A stretch of DNA of 64,000 bases from Schmidtea polychroa. Lineage: Eukaryota. This document shows, one piece after another, positions 19,428-19,499 of the stretch. Made by a program: the position numbers and the translations under genes. The notes beneath the pieces are model-generated. The model saw only the letters and a program-made list of their open reading frames with translations, did no database searches and had not been told where the DNA came from. The stretch is taken from assembly GCA_044892525.1 (NCBI GenBank), contig CM097885.1, positions 226,424,001 through 226,488,000 on the forward strand, written 5' to 3'. Positions within the stretch are counted from its first letter, which is position 1; each line of letters begins with the position of its first letter.

Positions 19428-19499
19428 CCATCGCAAATGATGAGAAGTTTCTGCGGTATGACTGATCACCATGCCAATGTAGAAATGGATCATCGCGAT
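19428..19499 (+). other. Conserved leader stem-loop with palindromic loop (DIS/packaging-like), element 2
   Basis: Loop ACTGATCAC (19461-19469) closed by GGTATG/CATGCC; outer stems TTTCTGC/GTAGAAA, GATGA/TCATC and ATCGC/GCGAT. Confidence 0.6.

Follow-up and report, generated by a model that had tools for sequence, protein, structure and literature searches.

A covarying leader hairpin with an invariant palindromic loop in giant gypsy-type retroelements of Schmidtea polychroa: a candidate dimer-initiation signal

Do the giant retroelements of planarians carry a signal in their leaders by which genomic RNAs could be paired and selected for packaging? The question is raised by a 64,000-nt stretch of the Schmidtea polychroa genome (GenBank assembly GCA_044892525.1, contig CM097885.1, positions 226,424,001 to 226,488,000 of the forward strand; hereafter the window), which holds two related long terminal repeat (LTR) retroelements. 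The window opens within the leader of element 1, and element 2 is complete (14277-44423, 30,147 bp); the sense strand of both is the plus strand. A first-pass annotation, made from the sequence alone, had noticed that the two leaders share, in 844-912 and 19428-19499, a stem-loop with a 9-nt loop containing the palindrome TGATCA, and had proposed a dimerisation and packaging signal that would let element 1, which lacks pol, be packaged together with autonomous relatives. Our comparison of the hairpin concerns these two copies within the window. The shared loop and its palindrome are indeed present in both, and the hairpin is composed of the following parts:

827-925, plus strand: full hairpin of element 1 (core in the first-pass annotation, 846-912)
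827-838 with 914-925, 846-850 with 908-912, 855-859 with 903-907, 863-868 with 894-899, and 871-876 with 886-891, plus strand: helices of element 1
860-862 opposite 900-902, plus strand: all-purine 3 x 3 internal loop of element 1, read from the alignment
877-885, plus strand: apical loop of element 1, 9 nt, ACTGATCAC, with the palindrome TGATCA at 879-884
19410-19512, plus strand: full hairpin of element 2 (core in the first-pass annotation, 19430-19499)
19410-19421 with 19501-19512, 19430-19434 with 19495-19499, 19439-19443 with 19490-19494, 19447-19452 with 19481-19486, and 19455-19460 with 19470-19475, plus strand: the five helices of element 2
19444-19446 opposite 19487-19489, plus strand: all-purine 3 x 3 internal loop of element 2, read from the alignment
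19461-19469, plus strand: apical loop of element 2, 9 nt, ACTGATCAC, with the palindrome TGATCA at 19463-19468

The stems that close the loop differ in sequence but pair in each copy, as had been described (GAGTG/CACTT in element 1, GGTATG/CATGCC in element 2), and an extra C-G pair in element 1 brings both to six pairs. The outer helix, GTTGG/CCAAC in one copy and GATGA/TCATC in the other, carries two compensated pairs and is closed by ATCGC/GCGAT, again in agreement with the earlier description. The core of the hairpin had been recognized correctly, but its bounds were drawn too short: a basal helix extends the structure to the full limits listed above. This helix is added by each copy when folded alone, and is AU-rich in element 1 and GC-rich in element 2. 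The stem is interrupted by a 4-nt bulge and by 3 x 3 and 2 x 2 or 2 x 5 internal loops. The unpaired features kept in both copies are the apical loop, the 4-nt AAAU bulge and the all-purine 3 x 3 internal loop, at the middle of which G faces A in one copy and A faces G in the other.

Folded alone, each core adopts the shared architecture as both its minimum free energy (MFE) and its centroid structure (-24.1 kcal/mol, z -2.8 in element 1; -25.2 kcal/mol, z -3.9 in element 2), whereas the reverse complements fold like shuffled sequences (z -0.45 and -0.03). The asymmetry between strands is due to G-U pairs, and the signal therefore belongs to the plus strand as a single strand. Both a minus-strand RNA and a cruciform in duplex DNA were rejected on the grounds that minus-strand folding is no better than that of shuffles. 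A splice-donor reading of the stem was dropped because, on direct reading, the GT dinucleotides are out of register between the copies. The hairpin is retained in the MFE structure with 100-800 nt of flank on each side, at a mean pair probability of 0.91-0.98 (about 0.98 in element 2), and the predicted fold is stable in contexts of up to 1.7 kb. The loop bases are predicted to be unpaired with probabilities of 0.89-1.00 in element 1 and 0.98-1.00 in element 2 (600-nt context).

Further evidence for the structure comes from the way in which the two copies differ. RNAalifold, which the first-pass annotation had named as a check on family alignments, returned the covarying stem-loop on the two-copy alignment: in an 80-column alignment of the core, 22 pairs are formed, of which five are changed on both sides, two on one side, and none is broken. 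On the joint alignment of the full hairpin, the five helices comprise 33 pairs with eight double changes, six single changes and again no broken pair. Sliding the 3' partners by 1-3 columns lowers the share of cells that pair to 35-51% and leaves 0-2 double changes. The consensus energy averages -6.1 (sd 2.4; best -14.5) over 1000 column shuffles, the observed value being -25.5, and none of the shuffles reaches the five double changes. We also imposed the structure derived from element 1 alone on element 2, where all 22 pairs are kept even as 12 of the 44 paired columns differ; an equal number of random substitutions keeps all pairs at P ~5e-6 and preserves 13.9 pairs on average. As a control that preserves the relatedness of the two elements, 129 windows of 80 columns from the 5' part of gag and the LTR start were folded in the same manner, and their best consensus energy is -10.3.

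A 12-nt block including the loop is identical between the copies, and the stems have changed by compensation. Such a pattern indicates a structure whose tip is sequence-specific, and it excludes recent exchange of the patch. The position of the hairpin is shared as well. Both elements have a common order of RING gene, 330-400 nt of spacer, hairpin, about 2 kb (1.9-2.1 kb) and gag; the distance from the end of the RING ORF to the base of the hairpin is 329 nt in element 2 (347 nt to 19428), and that from the end of the RING remnant is 395 nt in element 1. We conclude that the hairpin is a real RNA signal: the structure is strand-specific and conserved through compensatory change, its position is fixed, and its loop is invariant and predicted to be exposed.

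The hairpin is embedded in a patch of sequence similarity:

802-997 (element 1) and 19385-19588 (element 2), plus strand: hairpin island, ~200 nt, 66% identity, E ~1e-15

The leaders had been described as otherwise unalignable, which does not wholly hold: this island and a second one of ~70 nt align between them. A sensitive comparison of the two elements finds nucleotide-level homology in four islands only, namely the 5' part of gag, the LTR start, the hairpin island and the small repeat island. The part of the hairpin island upstream of the hairpin has no significant fold (z -0.5 and +1.3). We searched the window for a third copy of the hairpin with a two-copy covariance model, filters off, and with mismatch-tolerant motif searches, and found none. 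TGATCA is not enriched window-wide (17 occurrences, 25 expected), and no conserved 9-nt complement of the loop exists elsewhere in the elements (12 matches versus 10.8 expected).

The function of the signal has to be read from its form and context. We tentatively favor a role as a dimer-initiation and packaging signal on the genomic RNA of Burro-like giant gypsy-type elements, which we regard as a good possibility that falls a little short of probable. The hairpin would be a cis-acting leader structure of the full-length transcript, marking that RNA for selection; by the logic of retroelements, it would be carried on the full-length RNA downstream of the sequence resembling a primer-binding site (PBS). 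Loop-to-loop pairing of two genomic RNAs would start at the self-complementary hexamer UGAUCA exposed in the 9-nt tip, and the AAAU bulge and the all-purine 3 x 3 internal loop would be likely contacts for the zinc-knuckle part of Gag, which is of the nucleocapsid (NC)-like type. The position fits: on the sense strand, the hairpin of element 2 lies downstream of the PBS-like sequence (18278-18295) and upstream of the gag start (21383). Three CCHC zinc knuckles are retained in the Gag of both elements. By a nearest-neighbor estimate, the predicted homodimers gain ~10 kcal/mol over two monomers in both copies.

The dimer-initiation loop of lentiviruses has 9 nt in a 2+6+1 layout, and the same layout is found in the planarian loop. 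Dimer initiation works through palindromic apical loops, at sites located in the packaging region of the 5' leader (PMC516450, PMC12789967). The planarian hairpin is likewise located in the leader, between the PBS-like site and gag on the sense RNA, and resembles the lentiviral SL1 type as a leader hairpin with an apical loop that exposes a 6-nt self-complementary sequence (predicted unpaired at 0.89-1.00). A further likeness to SL1 is the purine-rich internal loop lower in the stem, which in the retroviral hairpin binds NC (PMC516450). Among LTR retrotransposons, Ty1 also has self-complementary 5' sequences, the palindromes PAL1 and PAL2, which are needed for the formation of RNA dimers with Gag as the chaperone (PMC6844567). 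The Ty1 palindromes, however, act through an extended duplex, and kissing loops are unconfirmed there; Ty1 is a copia-type yeast element, and the hairpin is structurally unlike it.

A number of observations weigh against dimer initiation. ViennaRNA cannot model kissing complexes. Two copies are all that the comparison covers, and because their loops are identical, no covariation in the loop points to self-complementarity, as opposed to recognition of its letters by a protein, as the trait under selection. A random 9-mer of the same composition contains a 6-nt palindrome at P = 0.054. The helix formed by the hexamer would have two G-C and four A-U pairs, worth -6.4 kcal/mol as a plain duplex. 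The hexamer is without a GC dinucleotide, whereas retroviral palindromes have a GC dyad (PMC12789967); in the loop it is preceded by A and C and followed by C, two of these three flanking bases being pyrimidines, whereas at the lentiviral site the purines flanking the palindrome matter (PMC516450). The hairpin lies 1.1 kb past the PBS-like site, behind an extra, accessory gene, which is unusual and sets it apart from lentiviral SL1, to which it has no sequence or Rfam similarity. Finally, a short open reading frame (ORF) opens at a conserved AUG inside the hairpin. A search of the whole window against Rfam 15 at gathering thresholds gave no match, and at E <= 10 the two hairpin regions returned noise only; the best sub-threshold match on the hairpin was to SNORD47, which occurred in a single copy, stayed at 15.5 bits (E 4.1) far below its threshold of 50, and was discarded. 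The hairpin belongs to the leader hairpins of retroelements, and within these it shows two features of the dimer-initiation class and lacks two others.

A GATCA core is also conserved at corresponding positions 60-70 nt upstream of the loop, at 812-817 within CCTGATCACC in element 1 and at 19395-19399 within CCGATCAACC in element 2. This upstream sequence could pair with the loop of the same molecule, over 6 bp in element 1 and 5 bp in element 2. An extended version of the dimerisation reading, which we consider unlikely, would make the hairpin the first signal for dimer initiation and packaging to be recognized among gypsy-type (Metaviridae-like) elements, with an independent origin of the lentiviral 2+6+1 loop geometry. 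It would include a switch, in which the upstream GATCA hides the loop and its release allows loop-to-loop pairing, and gag-only parasites would gain access to the particles of autonomous giant proviruses.

The same hairpin could be explained by a protein-binding site without any RNA-RNA pairing, where Gag or a host factor would read the loop, the bulge and the purine internal loop, and the palindrome would be incidental. Its role might be in packaging or nuclear export, in stability, or in internal ribosome entry for a gag that lies far downstream. We find this explanation, the main rival of dimer initiation, possible but rather doubtful. That the loop is invariant between such diverged elements is explained by sequence-specific recognition no less well than by kissing, and the palindrome, expected by chance at about 5%, would provide a weak 6-bp helix; moreover, the purine-purine oppositions of the internal loop survive the swap from G/A to A/G, and a gag located 1.9-2.1 kb downstream behind another ORF needs some device for its expression. 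By contrast, no protein partner can be named, no Rfam export or translation element matched, and protein binding is itself compatible with dimerisation, as one retroviral hairpin serves both (PMC516450). The constraint could also come from the short ORF noted above:

19437-19514, plus strand: short ORF of element 2, 25 codons, overlapping the hairpin, with its AUG in the bulge (shared AUG at 853 in element 1)

In that case the conservation would reflect a short upstream ORF under translational control, and the hairpin would modulate its translation or that of the downstream genes. The AUG (853 and 19437) is common to both copies and stands inside an identical 12-nt block, the only length difference, of 3 nt, leaves the frame intact, and the copies agree in 10 of 20 aligned codons; the differences between the copies nevertheless make the explanation distinctly improbable. 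Eight codons change the amino acid and two are synonymous, and the differences are distributed over codon positions as 7/2/7, a non-coding pattern whose first-position changes are exactly those that compensate the stems. The basal helix, which is outside the ORF, covaries as well. The ORF has 25 codons in element 2 but 64 in element 1 (AUG to stop at 1047), and the two are unrelated after ~21 codons. Still less probable is an element acting at the DNA level, for example a palindrome bound by a factor or a portion of an internal promoter, and so is a hairpin serving as a small-RNA precursor. TGATCA reads alike on both strands, a GATA-type repeat island lies ~1 kb downstream, and a hairpin of 70-100 nt has the size of a precursor; yet the pairing is strand-specific through G-U pairs, the minus strand equals shuffles, and compensation in the stems is meaningless for a site in duplex DNA. 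A small-RNA precursor would be expected to have one conserved arm, a variable loop and a near-continuous stem, whereas here the loop is invariant, both arms compensate and the stem is interrupted. That the similarity has no function at all, being a recently exchanged patch or a product of chance, is hardly credible. The comparison is limited to two copies, and the region was picked after being seen; but a recent patch would be near-identical, and the island shows ~61-66% identity. Chance is contradicted by the survival of the 22 core pairs with 12 of 44 columns differing (P ~5e-6), by the double changes at eight of the 33 pairs with none broken, and by the 1000 shuffles and 129 natural control windows, none of which comes near the observed value.

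The dimer-initiation and packaging reading, which we continue to prefer, places the hairpin on the genomic RNA of the elements that carry it. The features of element 2 are as follows:

14277-18270, plus strand: 5' LTR, 3994 bp, with TG...CA ends
18278-18295, plus strand: putative PBS, TGG followed by the complement of a tRNA 3' end, 7 nt past the LTR
18596-19081, plus strand: intact RING ORF, 161 aa, with a C-terminal RING finger (PF13920, E 8e-12) of the IAP type
21383-26428, plus strand: gag ORF, 1681 aa, with a Retrotrans_gag domain and CCHC zinc knuckles
26352-35186, plus strand: 2944-aa ORF with a fusion-glycoprotein-like domain, protease, reverse transcriptase (RT), RNase H, integrase and ankyrin repeats
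35792-37180, after pol: RING+MATH (TRAF-like) ORF
40274-44423, plus strand: 3' LTR, 4150 bp

Its order is 5' LTR, PBS-like sequence, RING ORF, hairpin, a 74-nt tandem array, gag, the 2944-aa ORF, the RING+MATH ORF and three further ORFs (37374-39950; 351, 253 and 189 aa), for which no Pfam match was found. Except for ~150 nt by which they differ in length (near 17160 and 43160-43310), the two LTRs show 99.8-99.97% identity, which marks element 2 as a young insertion. A 4-bp target duplication, TTAA, flanks it at 14273-14276 and 44424-44427. In the 2944-aa ORF, a fusion glycoprotein domain of the Monjiviricetes type (E 2e-59) lies upstream of the protease, RT, RNase H and integrase, with the ankyrin repeats behind them. 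This ORF overlaps gag by 77 nt in the +1 frame, and the overlap may represent a programmed frameshift or a break.

These features are close to those of Burro/GYPSM1, giant gypsy-like elements of dugesiid planarians that are suspected to be integrated proviruses (PMC6431247). The likeness extends to a size of >30 kb, LTRs of ~4 kb, a CCHC gag and an AT-rich genome (PMC6431247), to the mononegavirus-type fusion glycoprotein domain between gag and protease and the order of protease, RT, RNase H and integrase, and to the ankyrin, MATH/TRAF and RING accessory domains. Element 2 differs from Burro in that gag and env-pol are two overlapping ORFs rather than one polyprotein, and in that no BIR or BCL2 domain was matched in it at E <= 0.01. 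We regard the host elements as Burro-like, an assignment to a named family that we infer by comparing their architecture with the published description alone.

Element 2 carries host-like accessory genes, the RING ORF in the leader and the RING+MATH ORF after pol. Further ORFs lie within its LTRs, at 17113-17706 (197 aa) and 43110-43859 (249 aa), with no Pfam match; their difference in length results from that of the LTRs. The 74-nt tandem array (~4.4-5 units, 19651-20020) is located just 3' of the hairpin, and its units fold unremarkably. YGATCA occurs six times in the leader of element 2 against 1.5 expected, a modest excess, and four of the six are CGATCA copies in this array. An uninterrupted 948-aa ORF at 49027-51870, 4.6 kb from element 2, corresponds to residues ~390-1306 of RPC1, the largest subunit of RNA polymerase III (best match a chain of 7a6h, E 1e-208), and is an exon of a host gene; it shows the host to be a eukaryote, whose composition is unlike that of human.

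Element 1 was correctly described as lacking pol, of which there is none behind its gag-like ORF. Its features in the window are:

18-432, plus strand: remnant of the RING gene, in two reading frames with at least one frameshift (joint E 6e-9)
3029-7600, plus strand: open gag-like ORF, 1523 aa, with three CCHC knuckles and no pol behind it
9808-10554, plus strand: start of the 3' LTR, homologous to the LTR start of element 2

The following region, 10000-14270, has 25% G+C and is packed with tandem arrays with periods of 3-146 nt; it probably represents the body of the 3' LTR of element 1, which element 2 abuts or into which it is inserted. A third LTR start, at 58901-59647, is 81% identical to 9808-10554 and is an isolated fragment without an internal region in the window. 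The second leader island, at 2456-2521 in element 1 and 20497-20565 in element 2, consists of three tandem units of ~21-24 nt with an AGATAA core, 0.5-0.9 kb upstream of gag. As BURRO1 transcripts are reported to be gut-enriched (PMC8532177), this island of GATA-factor-type repeats could be an internal enhancer.

Does the shared hairpin then link the two elements as parasite and helper, in the sense of the co-packaging with autonomous relatives that the first-pass annotation had suggested? There is precedent for such relations: non-autonomous elements retain their helpers' signals for dimerisation and packaging, as in BARE1/BARE2 (PMC3735527), and rat VL30 is found in the particles of MLV (cited in PMC516450). 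As a gag-only non-autonomous element, element 1 also resembles the plant TR-GAG elements (PMC4350172). Elements 1 and 2, however, are too diverged for a helper/parasite pair of the BARE1/BARE2 type. Their Gag cores are 42% identical over 349 aa that include the three CCHC knuckles, and the remainder of the gag ORFs is unrelated. The stems of the two hairpins differ at eight pairs, and the predicted heterodimer gains only 3.4 kcal/mol with both hairpins kept, so that the 6-bp loop contact is all that would be shared. The earlier interpretation holds as far as a covarying stem-loop on the sense strand, with an exposed, invariant palindromic loop in the leader of related retroelements; co-packaging of element 1 with element 2 finds no support beyond the shared loop. 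With stems that differ, a weak predicted heterodimer and a Gag of its own in element 1, the conservation of the hairpin points to an ancient signal shared by the superfamily as a whole, and not to a link between the two elements. No closer autonomous partner of element 1 is present in the window.

Apart from yeast Ty1, the ways in which LTR retrotransposons choose and pair their genomic RNA are poorly known (PMC6844567), and our search of the literature gave no paper that connects planarian retrotransposons and kissing loops. The giant elements of planarians are abundant, transcribed and described as active (PMC8532177). Pairing and selection of genomic RNA and the binding of a protein are not mutually exclusive functions of the hairpin. 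Small, delimited and strongly covarying, it offers a concrete target for structure probing and for comparison across the family, and may serve as a marker able to link gag-only derivatives to their autonomous relatives.
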